Below are positions 11,578-24,529 of a DNA stretch of 64,000 bases, piece by piece; positions within the stretch are counted from its first letter, which is position 1; every line of letters starts with the position of its first letter. Both the position numbers and the translations under genes were made by a program. This DNA is from Utricularia gibba (Eukaryota; Plantae; Magnoliophyta): contig NEEC01000015.1 of the NCBI GenBank assembly GCA_002189035.1, positions 124,001 through 188,000 of the forward strand. The letters are read 5' to 3'. The notes beneath the pieces were generated by a model that searched no databases, was not told the DNA's origin, and worked only from the letters and a program-made list of their open reading frames with translations.

Positions 11578-13589
11578 ATGTCCCACGCGCCTCCTCCGCC
11601 GCTGCTCCGCCTCCCCCTCTTGCTTATCTTCATCTTGATTTCCGATGTAAAAACTCCGAAAACTCTCCATTTGTTTTTGTTTCAAGTTACGGAGTGTGAA
11701 TGCTGGGTTTTTGGTAGCAGCTCATAAATGTGGGATTTTCTGATGTCAATTAATGCAGGTGGGAGGAAGCAATGTAGCAGGAGAGAGTAATGGCGGGGAG
11801 AATCCCTTCACTCCCAAGGGCTTTCTGCTTCGGTACTGGAAGAAACAGATCAGCAACGATTTGCCCACCCCGGAGTTTTTGATTTCCAAGGCGTCACCGC
11901 TCACCGCCGCCGAGTACGTAGGGTTTACGAAGATTGCCAACGATCAGAACTCCCTCACGGCACATTTGCAGGATTTCTGCGCCAAGGCTAACCTTTTGTG
12001 TTTCCCCGACTTGGCTCCTAGTTTGGAGAAACACGACGGGGAAGTGAATTTCGCGAATTACAAGAATCAGAACTTTACTGGTTACGGAAATAATCGTCTC
12101 GGGGGGAAGGATAATTTCCAGAGCTACACCGAGAACGACAATGTTGTTATCGACACTTTCCGCCGTTACAGCCGCGGCGGTACCGGCCACATCGACAAGT
12201 TTACCGGATACGCCTCGGAGTCGAATGTTGTGGACCAGAGTTTCAACACCTACGGCACTGCCGCCGTTGGTGGCGAGGGCCAATTCACCAATTACAACGA
12301 CAACGTGAATGTGCCCAATCTGCGCTTCACATCCTATTCGGACGGCGGCAACGGCAGGAAACAGTCTTTCACAACCTATACCAACCTAGCCAACTCTGGC
12401 AAGGAGGGGTTTGCAGCATATGGGAAAAACGGCAACGCTGCCGTGAACGCATTCACGAGCTACGGCAATGATTCTAATGTAATGGGTTCCGGTTTCAAAA
12501 ACTACGGCGAAAGCGGCAATGGGGGAACAACACCTTCAGTTCTTATGGCTTCAATACAAATGTGCCGGAAAATACCTTCCAGAACTACGGCGCAGAAGGC
12601 AACGCTGCCACAGAGACATTCGCGAATTACAGAGAGCAGGCGAATGTGGGTGACGACACATTCAGTTCCTATGGCAAGCAATCAAACGGGGCGAAGAACA
12701 ATTTCGTCAATTACGGAAAATCTTTCAACGAAGGCAGCGATAAGTTCATTGGCTACGGCCAAGATGCCACCGGAGAAGCAAGTAGCTTCAAGATTTACGG
12801 TATGAACTACACCTTCAAGGAATACGACAAAGAAGGCAGTACCACATTCGCCAGTTACAGTAACGAGACCTCATCAGCCGCGGAAGCATCCATGGTTGCC
12901 AGCAGCAAGAGGGCAAACAGATGGGTTGAGCCCGGGAAATTCTTCAGGGAAGAATTGTTGAAGGAGGGAACGATAATGCCCATGCCCGACATTCGCGATA
13001 AAATGCCGATTAGGTCATTTTTACCGCGTGTAATCGTCTCCAAATTCCCATTTTCGTCCTCAAATCTCCCAGAAATCAAGAAGATCTTCCACGCCGGGGA
13101 CGATTCAAGTACGGCGAAAATGGTGACCGAGGCCCTGCGCGAATGCGAACGCGCACCGAGCCCCGGGGAAACGAAACGGTGCGTGGCGTCAATGGAGGAC
13201 ATGATCGACTTCGCGACGTCGGTGTTGGGGCGGAACGTGCAGGTACGCACCACCGCGACGACGGCGAGATCCAATGGCGAGATTATGCTGGGGAAGTGAA
13301 AGGAATCAACGGTGGCAAAGTGACGAAATCGGTGTCGTGCCATCAGAGCCTCTACCCTTACCTGCTGTACTACTGTCATTCTGTTCCTAAGGTTCGGGTC
13401 TACGAAGCGGATATTTTGGATCCGACAACGAAGACGAAGATCAATCACGGGGTCGCCATCTGTCATCTCGATACGACGTCGTGGAGCCCGGACCATGGCG
13501 CGTTCCTTGCCTTGGGCCTCGGCCCGGGGCAGATCGAAGTGTGCCATTGGATTTTTGAAAACGATATGACCTGGGCTGCTGCAGACTGA
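11578..13589 (+). CDS. BURP-domain protein, polygalacturonase-1 non-catalytic beta-subunit-like; two apparent 1-nt frameshifts
   Basis: Signal-peptide exon 11578-11646, then exon 2 from 11759 (ENPFTPKGFLLRYWKKQISNDLP, many FxxY repeats). The BURP domain (VEPGKFFRE; CH-x10-CH-x25-CH-x25-CHW) ends at 13589. The frame jumps at G5 12521-12525 and G4 13290-13293. Confidence 0.9.
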
Positions 13590-14103
13590 TCGCCAGAGCC
13601 CCCCGCCGGCCCCTTCTGGTCCAATGAAAGCCAGTTGCGTTGCACAAAGGGTAAACCACTGGCTCGACCACCGTCTCTCTCTCTCTCTCATTGCTTTCAA
13701 TTTACCACCATCAATCACCTCCTGGAATTGATTCACTTCATGTGTACATTACATCCTTTGGTCGCACACCACAGCAGCTTCTTCTTAATCCCCTAAAATC
13801 AATCTCTTGATTTTAGCACCGCCACGACCTCTTTTGAAAAAAAAAAAAATCTGAATTTTTTGTTCTTTCTTTAAAAACATGTGTATTTTGAATCCGGTAT
13901 TCAATTTTTTTCATTCGGTTATCTAAAATTTCAAGATTCGATATTTTATTTTTTCGGAATTCAGTTCTGAAAAGGAAATATTATTTATTCCTTTAATTAT
14001 GTAAAGCCTACGGGGAAATAAGATTTGCCCGCATGAAAGAGGTAGACTAGCAGCTGCGTAAACCATCCTGAATGCTGAGATTTGAGACCGACATCCTCCT
14101 CCT

Positions 14104-14381
14104 CTAGGGATAGCCTAGATGATGATTAGAGGGGATCCATGATGCGTCAGACGTCGATAGCTGAGATGATTGACCTTGTGTAGAGCTCTCGGCGGTGGCG
14201 GGGGTGGCGGATCCGGCCTCAGCGCTTCCCGCAGGGTTTACGGACGGTAAGTAAGCAAGACAATCGGCATCTAACAAGCAAACAAAAAGCAAACATAATT
14301 GATTGATGTACATGTACCTGACACCATGGCTGAAGAGATGAGCAGCAGAAGCAGTAAGAGCTTCACCAACTTGATATTCAT
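14104..14381 (-). CDS. Small secreted Pro-rich peptide, copy A (three-exon subfamily; last junction out of phase by 1 nt, possibly a pseudogene)
   Basis: Exon 1 14381-14318 (MNIKLVKLLLLLLLISSAMVS), exon 2 14224-14175 (ALRPDPPPPPPPRALHK), exon 3 14114-14104 (GYP* if entered in phase 1). Junctions are homologous to copies D and E. TATAAG about 40 bp upstream of the ATG. Confidence 0.55.
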
Positions 14382-14607
14382 TTTCAGTTTGCTGTGAGCT
14401 GCGAGGCGGCGTGTTACTTATAGGGAGAGGGGATTTTGTACGCACCGGCACCGTCATTTGTTTTCCGCAGATTTTTCCTTGGGACTGTTTCAACTTGTGA
14501 ATGCTTCTTTCCATGTTTCAACACGTTTTGCTTATAGCCAATCATATTTGTTATTTTCCCGGAAGCCACATGGAGAATATCCTGTTGGACTCCGTCAACT
14601 TTGGGGT

Positions 14608-14830
14608 GCTGTACTTTATTAAAGGTCTATTCACTACTATATTATAATTTGATGTTAAATAATACTCCTAAGTATTTAAATAATATATTTTTATTTAAAA
14701 TTTTTTTATGGTAAAACATAAATCCATTTTTCTTTAATTAATCTTATAAAGATAAAAAAAAATTTTATACGAATATATTATTATTATTTATTTAACATCG
14801 AGTAAATTAAAACACGGTACTAAATATATC
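14608..14830. repeat. AT-rich block duplicated at about 16539-16800
   Basis: CTGTACTTTATTAAAGGTCTATTCACTACTATATTATAATTTGATGTTAAATAATACTCCTAAGTATTTAAATAATATAT recurs with few substitutions at 16539 onward. Confidence 0.8.
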
Positions 14831-14924
14831 TTAAAATTTCTATTATTCACACGCAAATCATGAGAAATAAAATTAGACATGTGATTAATTTAACAGGTCT
14901 CCTAGAAAGTAGAATAAGAAATAA

Positions 14925-15990
14925 AAACCCCCGCTGGTGGGGTTGGGGTAGGTATCATTGCCAAATAACAAAGAATAATTACCAAATTCAGAGGAGAGGA
15001 GGACCTGGGGATGGGTCCCAAACCTTGACAGAACTATGTAATAGTTGTTGTTTTACATATTTCATATTCCAGCGCAGAGGCATCTTAACAAATTCGGCCA
15101 CCATTTTCGTCGTGGTTGTGACTTGGGGAAGATTTCTTTATAAGGGGCATCCGAATGCTTTAATCCAATCTGAGCAAATATTTGTATTTTTTGTCTTCAG
15201 ATATTCAGATCTCCATGCTTGTATATTCATTTTTATTGTAAATATTAAGCTGATTTATTTATTCGAAACCCAATTCTGGAGAAAGTAGTAAGAATGTGAA
15301 AGGTACAAGGAAGTCAGCCTCGAAAGAGACATGAGGCACAAATTCCGTTTCATTAAGGAGCTAGAGACCAGCGACTGCGTAGACCATCATCCATACAGGC
15401 AGGCAACAGCTTCAGAAGCTTGGTGATATCCATTTTCGGCTTCCAGCGAGCCGGGGACACCAAGTTTTTGTTATTTATAGCCAGCCAACCCCCTCAATTC
15501 CCGCGGACTCCTTCAACATTGGGTTGCTTTTTTTTCTTACCCCGATACGACTGCTACCGCAAACCATGACAACGCGTACTCGAGTCTCCCAAACAAATTC
15601 TTTGGAAATAAAATTTAATGCATCCAACCACAAAGTGCTCTACTCATTCAGCTTCATCATCATACTCGCCAACAACTCCCAGGCCCAGCCCAGCCCAGCC
15701 CAGCCCCCAGGTGGTGGAGGTGGAGGTGGAGGTGGAGGTAGAGTCTCATTGCTAGATAAGGGGAGCACCAAAGTCACGGTTGATTCACAACTAGGATCAA
15801 AAAACTAATATTAATTTTTGACCGAAATTTATAAAGGAATCCCAAATTCAATTCAGGGGGTTCACAAACCTTGACGCAAAAATGTTTCTTCTTTTACATG
15901 ATTCAAGTTTACTGTTTTTTCTACGTCTTCGCAAAATAAGACCACGAAGCAAAAGACCTGCTTCTTCTCCAACTTGGTCTCTTGCATGGC
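14925..15990 (-). repeat. Recent segmental duplicate of the copy D unit (about 18245-19600)
   Basis: Long near-identical stretches, e.g. 14996-15290 vs 18311-18595, and shared upstream blocks (CATATTCAGCTTCATCAT-like, TTGCTAGATAAGG, CACAAACCTTGA). Confidence 0.9.
15353..15433 (-). pseudogene. Internally deleted peptide gene, copy B
   Basis: ATG GAT ATC ACC AAG CTT CTG AAG CTG TTG (MDITKLLKLL, as in copy D) is fused directly to sequence matching the copy D 3' UTR (CTGCxTGTATGGATGATGG). About 370 bp covering the rest of exon 1, both introns and exons 2-3 is missing. TATAAATA is retained. Confidence 0.8.
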
Positions 15991-16538
15991 TGTGCTTTCG
16001 CGAAAATGAGAAATGAGTTATTTAAAGGATTATTTTGAATATCAATCATTTTTTTCTCTTCAAATTTGAGAATCACAATCTTTTCAATTTATTTTCAAGA
16101 ATTACTATCTCCAATATAAATGTTAAAATGATAATTTTATCTAAATTTAAACATTACACAAATTTATCATTGACAAGTTTTTTTTATTTTGTAATTTCAT
16201 TTCAATTTGTAAAATAAATTGAGATAATTTCTTCAAATTTAATTTAAAAATTGATATAGATGATTTAAAAATGTTATCCCAAAGTCGGCGATACATCATA
16301 AGAGGGGTCTGAAAGGAGATGGATGCTCTGAATGTTCTTAATCCAACTGTTTCATCCCCAGGAAATATGTGTGTTTGCCTTGTATTTTTTTTCGTATCTT
16401 TATCAAATGTTTAGATAGTTCAATATTCATTTTTATTTTATGTATTATTTTTTTTTTTGCATTTTAAAAATTCGAGGTTTTATTTTCTCAAAACACAATT
16501 CTGAACGAAGCGCATAAGAAAGCAGTGAGAATGCGCAA

Positions 16539-16800
16539 GCTGTACTTTATCAAAGGTCTATTGACTACTATATTATTATTTGATGTTGAATAATACTCGT
16601 AAGTATTTAAATAATATATGTTATTTAAAAGTATTTAAATAATATATTTTATTTAAAATTTTGTTATGGTAAAACATAAATCCATATTGCTTTAATTAAT
16701 CTTATAAATTATAAATATATTATTATTTTTCAAATAATATACTTTTAGGTAAATCAATTTTATTTATATTTAATATCGAGTAAACTAAAATATGATATTA
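16539..16800. repeat. AT-rich block, second copy of 14608-14830
   Basis: Direct sequence similarity to 14608-14830. Confidence 0.8.
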
Positions 16801-17000
16801 AATTTCTTTGGTTATGTTAAATGTTATTTTCTTATTATTTTTTAGATTGTGTTTATGCTTAATTGTTATTAGAAATGTTTAATTAGAAGTATATAATATA
16901 ATATTTAACTTTTTATTTAATTTAGAGTAATTTTTCTAAATCTTGTATTTTATATAATAATTTTGATAGTTTGAATTAAGTTTTTCTAGAGGTGTACACA

Positions 17001-18167
17001 TGATAGGAAGTGAAAGAAATAAAGCAGCAGATGATGACAAAATGGATCTTCCCAAGCTAACACTCTCTTGATTTCCGAAAGACTGTAGACGCCTAATCAT
17101 GAGCCTTGACATGCAGAACACTGGAATCTCTGACATGCAACATCATTAGTGTACCAGAGTTAGAGCAAACGTTTGCTTGCAAGTCACCCCAGTCCAGCAG
17201 AACCAGAGGAACACAAAATCTCACACAAAATAGTTTAGCTCAATTCAGTTTGGACAAGTTTTAGTTTTACTTTGATTTTATTTTAGACTTTTGTTTCTAT
17301 CTCTAGAGGATTTTTTTTAGCTTCTCTCTATAACCTTATTTCCATTTTCTCTAGATTGTATGGTCGTTCACGGTTAGAAACTCACGTTTCTGGGTTGGGA
17401 TACTCTCAGATCTATGTTTCGTTAGCTTATCTTCATCTCTTCTTTAAATCCGAACGAGTTTCGAGTTGTTTTCACGCGACTATGTTACAGTATTTCTGTA
17501 ACAGCCTCTTTATTCAAGACTCATGGTTAACTGATCACTACCCGCGAGTTTTGGAGAGTAGCAAGGTGGAGATCACAAACTCATGCACTTTTGGTAGGAG
17601 TAATACAACGTTTGGTGTGTGGTCGTATCTTAAGATCAATGGATAGATAGTGACCTCATATCTGTACTCATTGAGTTATTGGCAACACTCGGGCACACTT
17701 GCATAATTCGGACGTGAGGGTACACTAACAGGATCTCTTATTCTCACGTTCATCCAAGGAAGAGCAACATCGGGCTATTTCCATATCTTCTTGCAAGAGA
17801 GTGTAAGGGAGGGTAGACAATTCCTTATTCTTATAACCGAGTAATCGAGAAGGCCAAAGAAGAGTGAAGATGAAACAAACATAGCTGGACATGATTCCAA
17901 ACCCAAAAACATTTGTTTTATTCAAGGTTCATCGTTTACGTTTATTTCAGTTGTTTATTTAAAACCCTCTTATCCCTTTACTCAAGCTTCATCATTTATG
18001 TTTCTCACACCTTTACTTTACAAAACCGTTTATAAATCGTGACAATTGTATTCGGTGTAACATCATCATTCACTGAAAAACAAATCTCTGCGTTCGATAC
18101 TCATATTATGGTTTGTGTTTTACGAGTTTTAAAATATTAAAATTTGTTGTGGAAACGATATGCATCA
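17001..18167. mobile_element. Probable solo LTR (Ty3/gypsy-like) within the peptide array
   Basis: About 1.17 kb non-coding insert with TGAT...ATCA termini and a 3' end (CTCTGCGTTCGATACTC...GATATGCATCA) reminiscent of plant gypsy LTRs. No matching 5-bp TSD was found (ACACA vs GAATT), so the boundaries are tentative. Confidence 0.45.
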
Positions 18168-18780
18168 GAATTTTATACTCGCTATAAATTAGAATGAGAA
18201 GAATATTGTAATCGATATTGAGCTTCATCATGTTAGTGGGCAACAACCCCCCGTGGTGGGGTACGTATCAATGTCATTGCTGAATAAGAAAGAATAATTA
18301 CGAAATTGAGAGGAGAGGATGGACCTGGGGGTGGGTCCCAAACCTTGACAGAAATATGTTACAATTGTTGTTTAACATATTTCATATTCCCGCGGCCGCG
18401 CAGAGGCATCTTAACCAATTTGGCCACCATTTTCGTCCTGGTCGTGACTTGGGAAGATTTATTTATAAGTGGCATGGCCATCCGAATGTTTTAATCCAAT
18501 CTGAGCAAATATTTGTATTTTTTTTCTTCAGAAATTCAGATCTCATTTTTATTGTAAATATTAAGCTAATTTATTTATTCGAAACCCAATGCTGAAGGTA
18601 GTAGTAAGAACGTGAAAGCTACAAGGAATTCAACCTCGAAAGAGACATGACGCACAAATTCCGTTCCATTAAGGAGCTAGAGACACAGCGACTGAAACCA
18701 TCATCCATACAAGCAGGATTCGATCCAGTAACATTCAATCCAATGCTGCCGAGATTCCGGATCCACATCCATCCTTCACT

Positions 18781-19117
18781 TTATGGGTGGACTAGATGAT
18801 CGTACGGCGGATTAGGGGAGAGGAGGGGTCCATGATCTATCTATCTATCATAATTGAAATGAAATGATTTACCTGGCGGACGAGGATGCGGTGGTGGTGG
18901 GGATGGCGGATTTGGGCGGCGTCCCGATGGTGATGGGGGGACAGGCAGAGGTCTACAGGATGCTGAAAGCACGTATAACTTACTTACAAATGGGGGCGTA
19001 TGCATGTAAAACAAAGCGAGCAACATAATGCTGTATTTGATGATTACCGGAAAGGATGGCTGAAGAGATGACCACGAGAAGCAGAAGCAACAGGTGCACA
19101 AGCTTGGTGATATCCAT
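18781..19117 (-). CDS. Small secreted Pro-rich peptide, copy D (56 aa)
   Basis: Exons 19117-19048, 18962-18873 and 18791-18781, joined by two phase-1 GT-AG introns (85 and 81 nt): MDITKLVHLLLLLLVVISSAILS-ASCRPLPVPPSPSGRRPNPPSPPPPHPRPP-VHP*. TATAAATA about 50 bp upstream of the ATG. Confidence 0.75.
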
Positions 19118-20583
19118 TTTCAGCTTTCAGCGAGTCGGGCGCAAGACTGTTTTTTATTATTTATAGGCAAGCCAGCCTTGGACTGCTTCAACTTTGGGTT
19201 GCTTTACTTTCACGACTCCTCAAAGTCAAGACTGCTACTGATAGTTGAGTCTTGCAAACAAATGTTCTGGAAATAAAAGTTAATTCATCGCGTAGAATAG
19301 AATGACAACTACAAATACTGTTAGTACTCCATATTCAGCTTCATCATCTAACTCGCCAACGAAGCCCATCTGATGGAGTGTCTTTGCTAGATAAGGAAAA
19401 AAAAAAAAGCACCAAATTCAAGGTTGATTTACCACAAAACTAATCAATCATATTCAGTATTAATTTTTTAAAGTATATGAATCACAAATTCAACCGAGGG
19501 GCTCCACAAACCTTGATGGAAGTATATTATAATTATTTGTTTCATATTCGCTTTTCTCTACGCGTTGAAAAAAACCAGATGACGAATTTGGTCTCTGTTT
19601 TCGGTATGCGATGCGAATTCATAGGATTATTTTGAATAACAGTCATTTCTTTCTCTTCAAGTTTGATAATTACTATCTTATCAATTTCTTGAATTTAAAA
19701 GTTATATAAATTAACCAGTAACAAGTTTTTTATTTTGTATTTTTATTCTAATTTCTAAAATAACTTATTTTTTATTATTTTATTAATATTTTTAAAATTA
19801 TTGACAGCTTTATTCTTTTTTATTTAAACTGTAAAAATATAAAAATTGTTACAAAAAATGTAAATTATACTATTAAATTCTTATATATTTCACTATCATA
19901 AAAGTTGACTGCAGAATAGGGATATTTTCAATAACATCCATCTTAGTAACACAAAATTTGAAGAATCACTCTATTAACAATAGAAATTAAATTAATAAAA
20001 AACATATATATAATAATAATAATATACAAGTATATTTAATTTTAAAAAATAAATAGAATATGAATAATGTAATTATCTATATCTAAAATTCATTATTACG
20101 GATCAAAAAAATGGATATTAATTTTCAGGAATTAATTATTGCCATCCAAATTGATCATAAATTCAATGTATCGGACCACGCGTTCCCGAAATAAAGTTGC
20201 CTTTTAAAAAGCAGTATCGAATACTCCAAAAGGATACGCCACTAAAAGAGAAATCCACTCTACAAAGTTTCATGCACATCGTCTCCTTCTTAAAGTTACC
20301 CTACGTGAAAATGTCGTAGATATTAACGAGGTTGCTTTTTTGTGTTTTTTCTTGCAATGAAAAAAGATGGAGGGTGTAAGAATAAGGAAGATCCAATCAC
20401 ATCCTTGCTACTGTAATGTTTTCGAATTGTTGGGCCACCATTCAATCACTACCGAATACAGTGATATGAATACAACCCGATTCCATGTATTCAAGTTTGA
20501 GAATGGAAGAACAATTCCTAATGATGATAATTATATCAAATACAAATTGCTAAATAAAGGAGGTTGTGGTTCTGATGACACCT

Positions 20584-20846
20584 TTACGGATAGCCTGTCC
20601 GGTGGCGCGAGGGAGATGGAGTAGGGGTCGATGATGCGCCGACCATGGAAAACTGAAATGGCCGCCCGGCTTACCAGCTCCCGGTGGTGGCGGCGGTGGC
20701 GGGTCAGCTCGGCGCGCTATCCCAGTGGTGAAAAATGGTTACAAAGAAGAGGCCATCATGGTTATTATTTATACATGCGTACCTGATCCGATGGGTGAAG
20801 AGACGAGCACCAGAAGCAGTAAGAGCTTCAGTAATTTGTTATCCAT
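20584..20846 (-). CDS. Small secreted Pro-rich peptide, copy E (38 aa)
   Basis: Exons 20846-20783, 20716-20675 and 20594-20584, joined by two phase-1 GT-AG introns (66 and 80 nt; second donor G|GTAAGC): MDNKLLKLLLLLVLVSSPIGS-ARRADPPPPPPPGA-GYP*. Confidence 0.75.
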
Positions 20847-21444
20847 TTCCAGTTCCTGGTTCTGGTGAGGTGGGAATAGAAGCCCTCTTCTTCTCCGGGA
20901 AGTCACAGTGCGAATTTCTGCTTTATTGAATAGAATAGAATAGAATAGAAAACTGAGATGCTCGGCCCAATTCTCTCTCACCCAGTGGACTGATGGTTGC
21001 CATTTCCTACGCAAAGACAAGATCGGATCGGAGTAGACATCAAGAGTCTTGTCTGGTGTCGACCATTCAATGTTCTTATAGACGACCTGAGCGGAAAAGT
21101 AATCTCATCCATGGCACAGAAACTTGGTAGAATTGGAGAATTAGAGGAGAGAGAGAATTAATAGTTTAGATATATTTGTGTAAATTATTAAAATAATGTA
21201 TTTAAATATTAATATAAATTTTTTTGAAGATAATATTAATTTATATAATATTACTAATTAATTATATTATAATCATACATATTTTTTGGTAATTAAAAAA
21301 ATAATTATTTATCATTAAAAAATTTTCAATGGCAAGATCAACGACAGTTGAGTTGACACACGCCTCCGTCGTGGCAGCGCTGCTGCCGGCTACGGACAAA
21401 AAATGAAAGAATACCGAAACCATGTGGCCCAAGACCGCGAGTGA

Positions 21445-21520: not shown

Positions 21521-21857
21521 GAAGCATCGACCCATATCCATATGGACTTGGATTCTTCAACCCCAAGCTTATTGTATACTTTTTATTAATTTATTAAATT
21601 GCATGTTGTTGTAGTAAAAAATCGTTACTAAGGCGGAGACCAATTTTCAGGTCACGGATATAGACGAACGCATCATATCTGATTAAGATATCGACGTTTT
21701 GAGTGATATGGTGCTGTTGATAAAAATGAAGAAATATAAGAATTTTAATGTGAAAATCGTTGGAGAACGTAAAAATCACAAAATTGTAGGAGCTCACCGA
21801 AAAATGATTTTACTATAAAAATGTGAAAAAAAGATACAAATTAGAGTACTCGGAGTT

Positions 21858-21987
21858 CAACCCCTTCTTCTTTATATTTTATTATATTTATAGAAGAGAT
21901 TAGTCTGATCGAATTCTGAATCCAACCCCTTCTTCTTTATATTTTATTATATTTATAGAAGAGATTAGTCTGATCGAATTCTGAATC
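21858..21987. repeat. Perfect 65-bp tandem duplication
   Basis: The unit CAACCCCTTCTTC...GATCGAATTCTGAATC occurs at 21858-21922 and 21923-21987. Confidence 0.9.
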
Positions 21988-22893: not shown

Positions 22894-23412
22894 TCAAGGC
22901 GCTGGACCATATATCGGGCTTCCCTCGTTATCCGACCCGGGTGACGGCTGTGGGTCCTCCGGCTTTGGCTGTGCATCAATTTCCATCCCCGCTGGTGGAA
23001 GGATGTCCTGGTTATATGGTGGTGAGTCTTCCTGCTCGGGCAGTGGTGGTGGATTCTCTAGAGCGTCTTGTGATGGTGGGATTTCCGGCTCATGCGTTGG
23101 TAACTCTTCCCTTACTGGTTTTTCCGCCTCCGGTGGTGATGGTGGCATGTTCCGCCGTATACGCTCATTGGCGGTCGGAGATGGCATTGAAGCCGGAACC
23201 CTCTGCTTAGAAAACGTAAAGGGAAATAACATCTTCCTATGGTAGAGAGTTGGTCGATAAATCTCCAGACCTTAGTGAAATTACAGGACAACCATTAAAC
23301 CAAATTAAAAAGCACTCGTTAATCTAAAAGTAAAACGTGCTTAAGATTTAACACACGAACCTGGCAACAGCATCACCATTAAGAAAACCAAAGCTGCCGC
23401 AGAGCAATTCAT
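22894..23412 (-). CDS. Secreted acidic Pro-rich protein, copy F (two-exon subfamily)
   Basis: Exon 1 23412-23361 (MNCSAAALVFLMVMLLP), phase-1 intron, exon 2 23270-22894 (GLEIYRPTLYHRKMLFPFTFSKQRVPASMPSP...SPIYGPAP*). The N-terminal mature region aligns with copy G. Confidence 0.7.
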
Positions 23413-24008: not shown

Positions 24009-24529
24009 TCAGTTGGTCGGACCGGGTGGCGGCGGACCTTCAGCATTCGTTGTTGGTGGATTTTCACTCGGGGTTGGTGGTGAGACTTCCGGTCCTGGTG
24101 GCGGCGGAGGATTCTCGGGCTGTGGTGGCGGAGGTGGATTCTCGGGCTCTGGCGGTGGAGGATTCTCCGGCTCCGGCGGCGGTTCACCACGTCGTATAAG
24201 TCCTCTCGCCGCCGGCGGTGGACCCCCAATTGGCAATTCCCGTTTAGAAAACTCGAAAGGAAACGCTTTACGATTGTATAGTGAGGGTGGTGCAAGAGGT
24301 CGCTCACCTAAAATCAGAGAAAGCAAGCAGCATAAAGGCATGATTTGTTTTGCTCGCGCAGAGAGTGGAGGAGGAGCACTGTCCCACTTGAATGAACACA
24401 CAAATATCTTTCACATAAAACTCCGGGAGTAAGCCGTGTACCTCGAACCGCCGTGGTTTGTCCACCCCAGAAACAAAGCGTGACAACCATAATCGCCGCC
24501 AGAAGAAGCACCCCGGCAAACTTATTCAT
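24009..24529 (-). CDS. Secreted acidic Pro-rich protein, copy G (two-exon subfamily) with PEPENPPPP repeats
   Basis: Exon 1 24529-24442 (MNKFAGVLLLAAIMVVTLCFWGGQTTAVR), phase-1 intron, exon 2 24307-24009 (GERPLAPPSLYNRKAFPFEFSKRELPIGGPPP...PEPENPPPPEPENPPPPPQPENPPPPP...GPTN*). Confidence 0.78.

Follow-up and report, generated by a model that had tools for sequence, protein, structure and literature searches.

Candidate secreted proline-rich peptide genes in a tandem array of Utricularia gibba, with a stretch that is exon in one copy and intron in another

What kind of genes occupy the minus strand between 14.0 and 20.9 kb of a 64,000-nucleotide (nt) stretch of the Utricularia gibba genome (contig NEEC01000015.1, positions 124,001 to 188,000; hereafter the window, numbered from its first letter), and do they share one exon plan? 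The initial annotation had proposed that three tiny genes, copies A, D and E, each consist of a Leu-rich signal exon, a phase-1 intron, a Pro-run exon, a second intron and a terminal micro-exon of 11 nt. We examined the locus using assembled RNA contigs from four runs (X1, X3, X5 and X9) of three studies, the region covered being 14050-20049. Our reading, to which we assign a probability of about 0.6, is that the interval holds lineage-restricted genes for tiny secreted Pro-rich peptides in a tandem array that has partly decayed, and that the second intron of copy D arose from coding sequence. The most interesting aspect of the locus is the exon-versus-intron contrast between A and D. The three copies are:

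13988 to 14396, minus strand: copy A, a two-exon gene defined by RNA contigs.
18574 to 19131, minus strand: copy D, a three-exon gene defined by RNA contigs in X1, X3 and X5, with a diverged allele in X9.
20584 to 20846, minus strand: copy E, a model translated from its predicted exons.

These paralogues (A, 14381-14104; D, 19117-18781; E, 20846-20584, with start codons at 14381, 19117 and 20846, respectively) have a common build, in which a Leu-rich signal exon with a phase-1 GT donor at its end precedes a Pro-run exon. This part of the initial annotation stands: the shared elements are seen in the sequence of all three copies, and the intron 1 joints of D and A are present in RNA. Used as a query, exon 1 of A retrieves E at 83% identity and D at 71%, and a 33-nt exon-1 pattern gives two matches against none expected by chance. 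Pairwise identity among the three copies is 69-83% in exon 1 and ~48-59% in intron 1, the predicted intron 2, the 3’ untranslated region (3’UTR) and the region upstream.

The gene model of copy D is solid. Exon 1 (19131-19048, with the ATG at 19117), exon 2 (18962-18873) and exon 3 (18791-18574) are separated by intron 1 (19047-18963, 85 nt) and intron 2 (18872-18792, 81 nt), both GT..AG. The joints 19048|18962 and 18873|18791 are carried by one contig each in X1, X3 and X5, and the diverged D allele of X9, probably from another accession, is spliced at the same two places; the two introns coincide exactly with those predicted, the second at junction 18873/18791. The mRNA is 392 nt long, and its first AUG opens a 56-codon open reading frame (ORF) ending in V-H-P-stop. 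The predicted precursor lengths hold both for D, where the 56 amino acids (aa) follow from the spliced RNA, and for E, where 38 aa are obtained by translating the model. In D the proposed 11-nt micro-exon does not exist as such: exon 3 measures 218 nt, of which only 11 nt are coding, with the stop at 18783-18781 and the rest belonging to the 3’UTR.

Two contigs begin at 19131, the 5’ end of D. In the X5 contig this end is preceded by 25 foreign letters terminating in GGG, which we infer to be a template-switch oligo, hence 19131 would be the D cap site. At the opposite end, the D contigs stop at 18574/5, inside the polyadenylation-signal-like motif AATAAATAA. The apparently capped, spliced mRNAs of A and D are ~320-390 nt long and have TATA boxes ~30 nt upstream:

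19158 to 19165, minus strand: TATA box TATAAATA, ~34 nt upstream of the D 5’ end.
14415 to 14422, minus strand: TATA-like box TATAAGTA, ~26 nt upstream of where the A contigs begin (14396).

The X9 alleles differ from the window in several places. At the end of exon 2 of D (18873-18889), CATCCT is replaced by ATACGT, changing His-Pro to Ile-Arg and leaving the exon 3 junction unchanged; there are also two synonymous changes in the signal exon and several differences in the 3’UTR. The A allele has an S-to-P change in the mature part. In X9, the ORFs of A and D both stay open.

Copy A, for which the model is likewise solid, is built differently. It consists of exon 1 (14396-14318, with the ATG at 14381), intron 1 (14317-14225, 93 nt, GT..AG) and exon 2 (14224 to ~13988), and encodes a 61-aa precursor ending in GYP, with the stop at 14106-14104. 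The joint 14224|14318 is present in the A contigs. The joint 14175|14114, which the initial annotation had predicted for a second intron, is absent from the RNA contigs, and contigs X9 rec7 and X1 rec1 run unbroken across 14050-14224/6, including the stretch in question:

14115 to 14174, minus strand: predicted "intron 2" of A, 60 nt in the window, retained in the mRNA and read as coding.

Thus, the three-exon plan is borne out by RNA in D and fails in A, which has two exons and retains the stretch, and the "shared micro-exon" is no family rule.

How A reads through depends on a single base. At 14134-14131 the window has CCCC, and every A RNA contig has one C more; the X1 and X3 contigs are otherwise identical to the window letter for letter. 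When translated with five C, the frame stays open to G-Y-P-stop, giving the 61 aa; with four, it runs into a stop at CTAG. Because ~3 of 20 G/C runs of at least four bases in the checked sequence look one base short (that of A included), we read the four-C run as an assembly error and not as a polymorphism. The ending GYP that had been proposed for A is reached, by read-through with the extra C; the spliced model from which it had been derived (64+50 coding nt) has a phase 0 junction and is out of frame, so that its "last exon" would read A-I-P-R onward. We also rejected as a gene a 136-aa ORF at 14104-14514, which exists only with four C and ignores the proven intron 1.

The end of an X3 contig at exactly 14114 was considered as an acceptor mark and rejected: a snap-back contig branches the assembly graph there, and the donor side of the A "intron 2" has no break to pair with it. 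The snap-back contig itself (X3, 14103-14142; 65 nt, depth 158) is made up of a 29-nt stem and the reverse stem joined by a 7-nt loop, with two CTAG palindromes around the A stop region at its centre, and is an artefact of the cDNA or of the assembly. Separately, low-depth X9 contigs at 14468-14517 extend upstream of the A TATA box and continue into 112 letters unlike the window. The break is without an AG, so it is no canonical splice, and the extension may reflect either a chimeric contig or a structural difference of the X9 strain.

In X1 and X3, word depth is 128-370 for A and 6-23 for D. The spacers 14650-18449 and 19250-20049 have zero RNA depth in all four runs, which speaks against DNA carry-over as the origin of the RNA signal.

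Copy E is a model comprising exon 1 (coding part 20846-20783), intron 1 (20782-20717, 66 nt), exon 2 (20716-20675), a putative intron 2 (20674-20595, 80 nt, 62% GC) and 11 terminal coding nt (20594-20584). Splicing would give a product of 38 aa; the unspliced transcript would encode 76 aa and end in a different tail. The only hint of E expression comes from X5, where D leaves ~0.12 of the words sampled from 18700-20900 unexplained, and these word shares fit the spliced and unspliced models equally well. The putative intron 2 of E contains one G/C run, 20624-20627; there is a small chance that this run too is one base short, in which case E would read to GYP-stop unspliced.

What, then, is this stretch, which separates the Pro run from the final 11 coding nt and is spliced out of D and translated in A? 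It is homologous in A, D and E, with conserved blocks TCAYYTCA, CATCATGGAYCCC and CATCTAG. In a tblastn comparison, the A protein matches the unspliced translation of D at 18927-18784 (E 8e-6), and D intron 2 aligns along its whole length with the translated stretch of A. The 81 nt of D intron 2 are in frame with the flanking exons and contain a single in-frame TAG, which lies inside a GATA repeat. The stretch is 61 nt long and open in the RNA version of A; that of E (80 nt) is open in two frames and is one nt off a multiple of three. The GT of A (GTCAAT) and that of D (GTAAAT) occupy the same position and differ only at +3; the E donor (GTAAGC) lies 8 nt upstream of this common position; and the AG located 11 nt before the stop is common to all three copies. 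No repeat or transposon signature was found. D intron 2 is an intron homologous to the coding sequence of a relative and containing no inserted DNA, which is one of two marks of intronization, the other being an exonic ancestral state seen in an outgroup.

On these alignments, we read D intron 2 as former coding sequence that probably turned into an intron, with intronization modestly favoured over the reverse. The ancestral gene would have had two exons, like A; the two-exon build is shared by F and G, two neighbouring genes described below, for which homology to A, D and E is not demonstrable. D intron 2, and that of E if it is used, would have arisen from coding sequence flanked by latent splice sites, and splicing of D would now bypass the in-frame stop while keeping the C-terminal tripeptide. 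Our preferred reading of D is the stop-associated route of intronization, near to the exitron concept. This route has been described, documented cases being lacking (review PMC3443670). Exitrons are exonic introns which are alternatively spliced within one gene and are stop-free (Marquez et al. 2015, PMC4484396); at the contig level, the stretch studied here is removed in D and retained in A, i.e. the comparison is one between paralogues.

The reverse direction is unlikely, though it survives better than any other alternative. It would start from a three-exon ancestor like D, with A having lost the use of intron 2 (de-intronization or exonization) and its stretch being by chance open to GYP. 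A and E are the closest pair by exon 1 (83%), so that, were E to be spliced, fewer events would be needed on this view (one loss, in A) than on ours (two gains), and A retains a branch-like CTAAT and the CTAG acceptor. But a 61-nt intron would have had to be stop-free and frame-restoring by chance, for which we estimate ~0.1, and the state of the other two stretches, in frame with one stop in D and open in two frames in E, is as expected of former coding sequence. The different donor positions of D and E, moreover, fit separate origins.

Is D a working gene at all? The array contains, in addition to A, D and E, the following truncated, duplicated or decayed elements:

15230 to 15487, minus strand: copy B, a truncated D duplicate, with the promoter and first 10 codons (ATG 15433) fused to the 3’UTR.
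14955 to 16217, minus strand: segmental duplicate of 18274-19763, at 80-93% identity.
~15105 to 14920, minus strand: C1, a decayed C-type unit, paralogue of C3.
~15990 to 15640, minus strand: C2, a decayed C-type unit with a Pro10 exon, paralogue of C4.
18210 to 18440, minus strand: C3, a decayed C-type unit, paralogue of C1.
19320 to 19600, minus strand: C4, a decayed C-type unit, paralogue of C2.

Copy B has lost the equivalent of D 18718-19086, and the segmental duplicate also contains C1 and C2. The C-type units are interleaved with the other copies of the array; their start context is like that of exon 1 of A, D and E, their donor is TCAAG|GTTTG, and their second exon contains a Pro run (Pro10 in C2) and a GATGATGAAGCTGAAT block. 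No RNA from B or from C1-C4 was found in the four runs.

So many dead copies lend some weight to the view that only A is functional, D and E being duplicates in decay like B and C1-C4, with cryptic splicing and short products that have no role. The lower depth of D in the runs where A is abundant, its in-frame stop and the frame shift of E in the homologous stretch point the same way. We nevertheless find this account doubtful: D keeps its TATA box, start context and signal exon and appears to be spliced cleanly and constitutively, its ORF is intact in two alleles, and its splicing restores exactly the C-terminal x-aromatic/His-Pro-stop of the family.

We then turned to the products. All three begin with a Lys within the first 5-7 residues, followed by a core whose hydropathy over 10 aa is 3.1-3.5 and by c-regions (SSA/VS-A, SSA/LS-A and SSP/GS-A) with small residues before the exon boundary. 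These are the classical features of a secretory precursor, namely a basic n-region, a hydrophobic core of at least 8 aa and small residues at -3/-1, and the Leu-run N-terminus is thus inferred to be a cleaved signal peptide. The predicted mature parts (40 aa in A, 33 aa in D and 17 aa in the E model) have isoelectric points of 8.8-12, 25-48% Pro and 0-1 Cys. The genes are, as expected, very small, their N-termini resemble signal peptides and their mature parts are rich in Pro, and A and D are transcribed. In secreted plant proteins, contiguous Pro and Ser-Pro4 are hydroxylated and arabinosylated; the mature products would probably undergo prolyl hydroxylation and O-arabinosylation on their way through the secretory pathway to the apoplast.

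The searches made gave no known family. Pfam, taken up to an E value of 10, returned only noise (DUF5437 at 0.056 and DUF1180 at 1.3); an exact look-up of four products among 15 billion proteins gave no entry; and word-seeded protein searches with A and with an A/D/E profile returned no relatives. The 12-13-aa CLE motif R-x-x-P-x-G-P-x-P-x-H-N/H is absent from A, D and E under strict and loose patterns alike, as are matches to the CEP SPG-x-GH and PIP SGPS-x-x-G-x-GH motifs. Sulfated-peptide motifs (PSK, PSY, RGF and CIF) are likewise missing, with no DY in any product, and neither the IDA/IDL end [SG]PS-x-[KR]-H-N nor [KR]HN occurs anywhere in the three. The initial annotation was correct in not recognising the family, which has no Pfam match, no protein relatives and none of the CLE, IDA, PIP, CEP, PSY or RGF motifs. 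A, D and E are most likely fast-evolving, lineage-restricted, cationic secreted peptides of the hydroxyproline type.

The initial annotation itself had gone further, suggesting that A, D and E all use a selected second intron and an 11-nt terminal coding exon, and that the products are Pro-hydroxylated ligands of an unrecognised family. D is exactly so structured. In the E model the donor is good (CTG|GTAAGC), the homologous site provides an AG acceptor and the frame is correct; over the terminal 11 nt, A and E are identical at 9 positions. This proposal is nonetheless improbable. It is refuted for A at the contig level, where the stretch is unspliced and the spliced model out of frame, and the donor of E is off the position common to A and D. 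That splice sites are kept while introns diverge had been taken as a sign of selection; with identities among copies of 53-59%, however, "intron 2" is within the range of intron 1 and the UTR (48-58%), i.e. no more diverged than other non-coding parts, and with the 8-nt donor shift of E the argument is weak. The terminal 11 nt (D agrees with either of the others at only 6-7 of 11) are too short to carry weight as evidence of selection: agreement at 9 of 11 has a chance of ~0.07 against the local background (binomial estimate). Compared across the copies, the sequences point only weakly to selection. As for the ligand role, no conserved mature motif and no known ligand motif was found, and the mature parts differ strongly between paralogues, unlike those of conserved ligand families.

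That the transcripts are non-coding, or young de novo genes whose short ORFs yield no stable product, would agree with the very short, low-complexity ORFs and the lack of any homologue found, but is very improbable given a first AUG in good context ~14 nt from the cap site, a signal-peptide-like exon that is the best-conserved part among old paralogues, a Pro run written in mixed CCN codons and ORFs kept in a second allele.

Several points weigh against our own reading, that of a secreted-peptide array with an intronized stretch in D. Firstly, secretion and peptide products are predictions. Secondly, beyond the Pro run the mature parts of A, D and E have little in common, and they appear too divergent for purifying selection to be seen in them. 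Thirdly, the direction of the intron change is unpolarised, A and E being the closest pair by exon 1; should E be spliced as in its model, a single loss (in A) and two gains would be equally parsimonious. Fourthly, contigs drop rare isoforms, and the A stretch may undergo minor splicing. Finally, D is ~10-30-fold less abundant than A in the same runs and could be a decaying copy. A stronger version, in which A is the "before" and D the "after" of a stop-bypassing intron and the family also has a real role (e.g. as defence or trap-fluid peptides in bladderwort), we consider unlikely.

Around the array lie other genes. ORFs with TORTIFOLIA1, AP2, PHO4 and galectin domains mark the window as plant DNA, and a look-up of the neighbouring AP2 ORF gave no record. 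A BURP/polygalacturonase-beta-subunit-like gene with FxxYG repeats, at 11753-13600 on the plus strand, is interrupted by two frame shifts, both in G runs (12521-12525 and 13290-13293), and so appears as three overlapping ORFs; adding one base of unknown identity per run gives a single ORF of 612 codons. These frame shifts are probably homopolymer assembly errors and not the mark of a pseudogene. An Rfam scan of 13.5-25 kb gave no match, so no hidden RNA gene is indicated there. In the spacer between E and G, at 21850-21979 on the plus strand, a 65-nt AT-rich unit is tandemly duplicated in perfect register at 95% identity. Beyond it are two further genes:

22894 to 23412, minus strand: gene G, a 142-aa model in which a phase-1 intron separates a signal exon from an acidic Pro-rich exon.
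24009 to 24529, minus strand: gene F, a 128-aa model, paralogue of G at 45% identity.

F and G have in common the blocks RPxLYxRK..FPFxFSK and IRR..PP.PPE, and are predicted to be secreted acidic Pro-rich proteins. Neither has a Pfam match, a HMMER profile found no relative of them among 1.84 billion representatives, and a word-seeded protein search with F exon 2 returned no relatives. Local alignments of F and G with A, D and E score no higher than those of shuffled sequences (p 0.26-0.84), and the exon 1 DNA gives no match. We had considered GKSFHFNYDR in D, GHFSFPWS in E and HKVNHLSYRR in A as versions of the F/G motif RKxFPFxFSK, and rejected this on the same shuffle test and DNA comparison. 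What links F and G to the array is position and gene build only.

What the locus contributes is, in our view, the following. Expressed genes of 56-61 codons, with A very abundant, are absent from the large protein collections searched, which suggests that small secreted peptides still escape gene calling. The A/D pair is a compact, testable case of a coding stretch becoming an intron, with one donor base, one stop and a preserved frame. The window seems to lack a base in some G/C runs, and a reading from sequence alone can then arrive at frame shifts or "introns" that do not exist. The family is apparently confined to one lineage, and its wider impact is limited for now.

How do these genes compare with known systems? 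HypSys precursors and short extensin-like peptides also have a signal peptide followed by a short, basic, Pro/Ser-rich mature part, and D carries one SPPPP block with PPS-type motifs while A and E have runs of seven Pro. HypSys peptides are Hyp-rich and pentose-glycosylated, measure 18-20 aa and come from a wound-induced precursor. The likeness to this family, for which the libraries searched contain no sequence profile, is one of composition only: there is no sequence relation, and A, D and E each encode one tiny precursor, whereas HypSys precursors are at least 146 aa long and contain several peptides each. True extensins differ in having repeated SP3-5 blocks and Tyr cross-link motifs; the repeated Ser-Pro(3-5) blocks of extensins and other HRGPs are not found here, the single SPPPP of D having no equivalent in A or E (Asp-Pro7).

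The initial annotation had likened D to the IDA peptide. The two have in common a signal peptide and a small precursor, and PVPPSPSGRRPN of D has 6 of the 12 residues of the IDA peptide. The resemblance does not hold up: D has RRPN in place of the Arg-His-Asn end of IDA/IDL, the genes of A, D and E have introns, and because A and E lack the match, it is probably compositional. The likeness to the Pro-rich cationic antimicrobial peptides of animals (apidaecin, Bac) is also one of composition, without homology; here too the peptides are small and cationic, contain little or no Cys and have 25-48% Pro, D showing PRP/HPRPP-type motifs, and hydroxylation in the plant secretory pathway would alter them.

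With exitrons and intronized sequences, the locus shares a stretch within a coding exon that is spliced out of one gene (D) and translated in its paralogue (A); the D stretch is a multiple of 3 in length, as is often the case in exitrons, and is homologous to coding sequence. It differs from exitrons in that D is apparently constitutively spliced and contains a stop, and A is apparently constitutively unspliced. Similar in gene architecture are the two-exon families of the defensin-like/NCR type. A, D and E lack a cysteine framework, their mature parts being Pro-rich and probably unstructured, but the intron likewise falls just behind the signal peptide, conservation is concentrated in the signal exon, and the genes occur in tandem arrays with rapid turnover and numerous dead copies. 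A conserved signal exon joined to fast-changing mature parts is typical of rapidly evolving secreted-peptide families, unlike conserved ligand families, and would fit a defence or wall-associated family better than a conserved receptor ligand.

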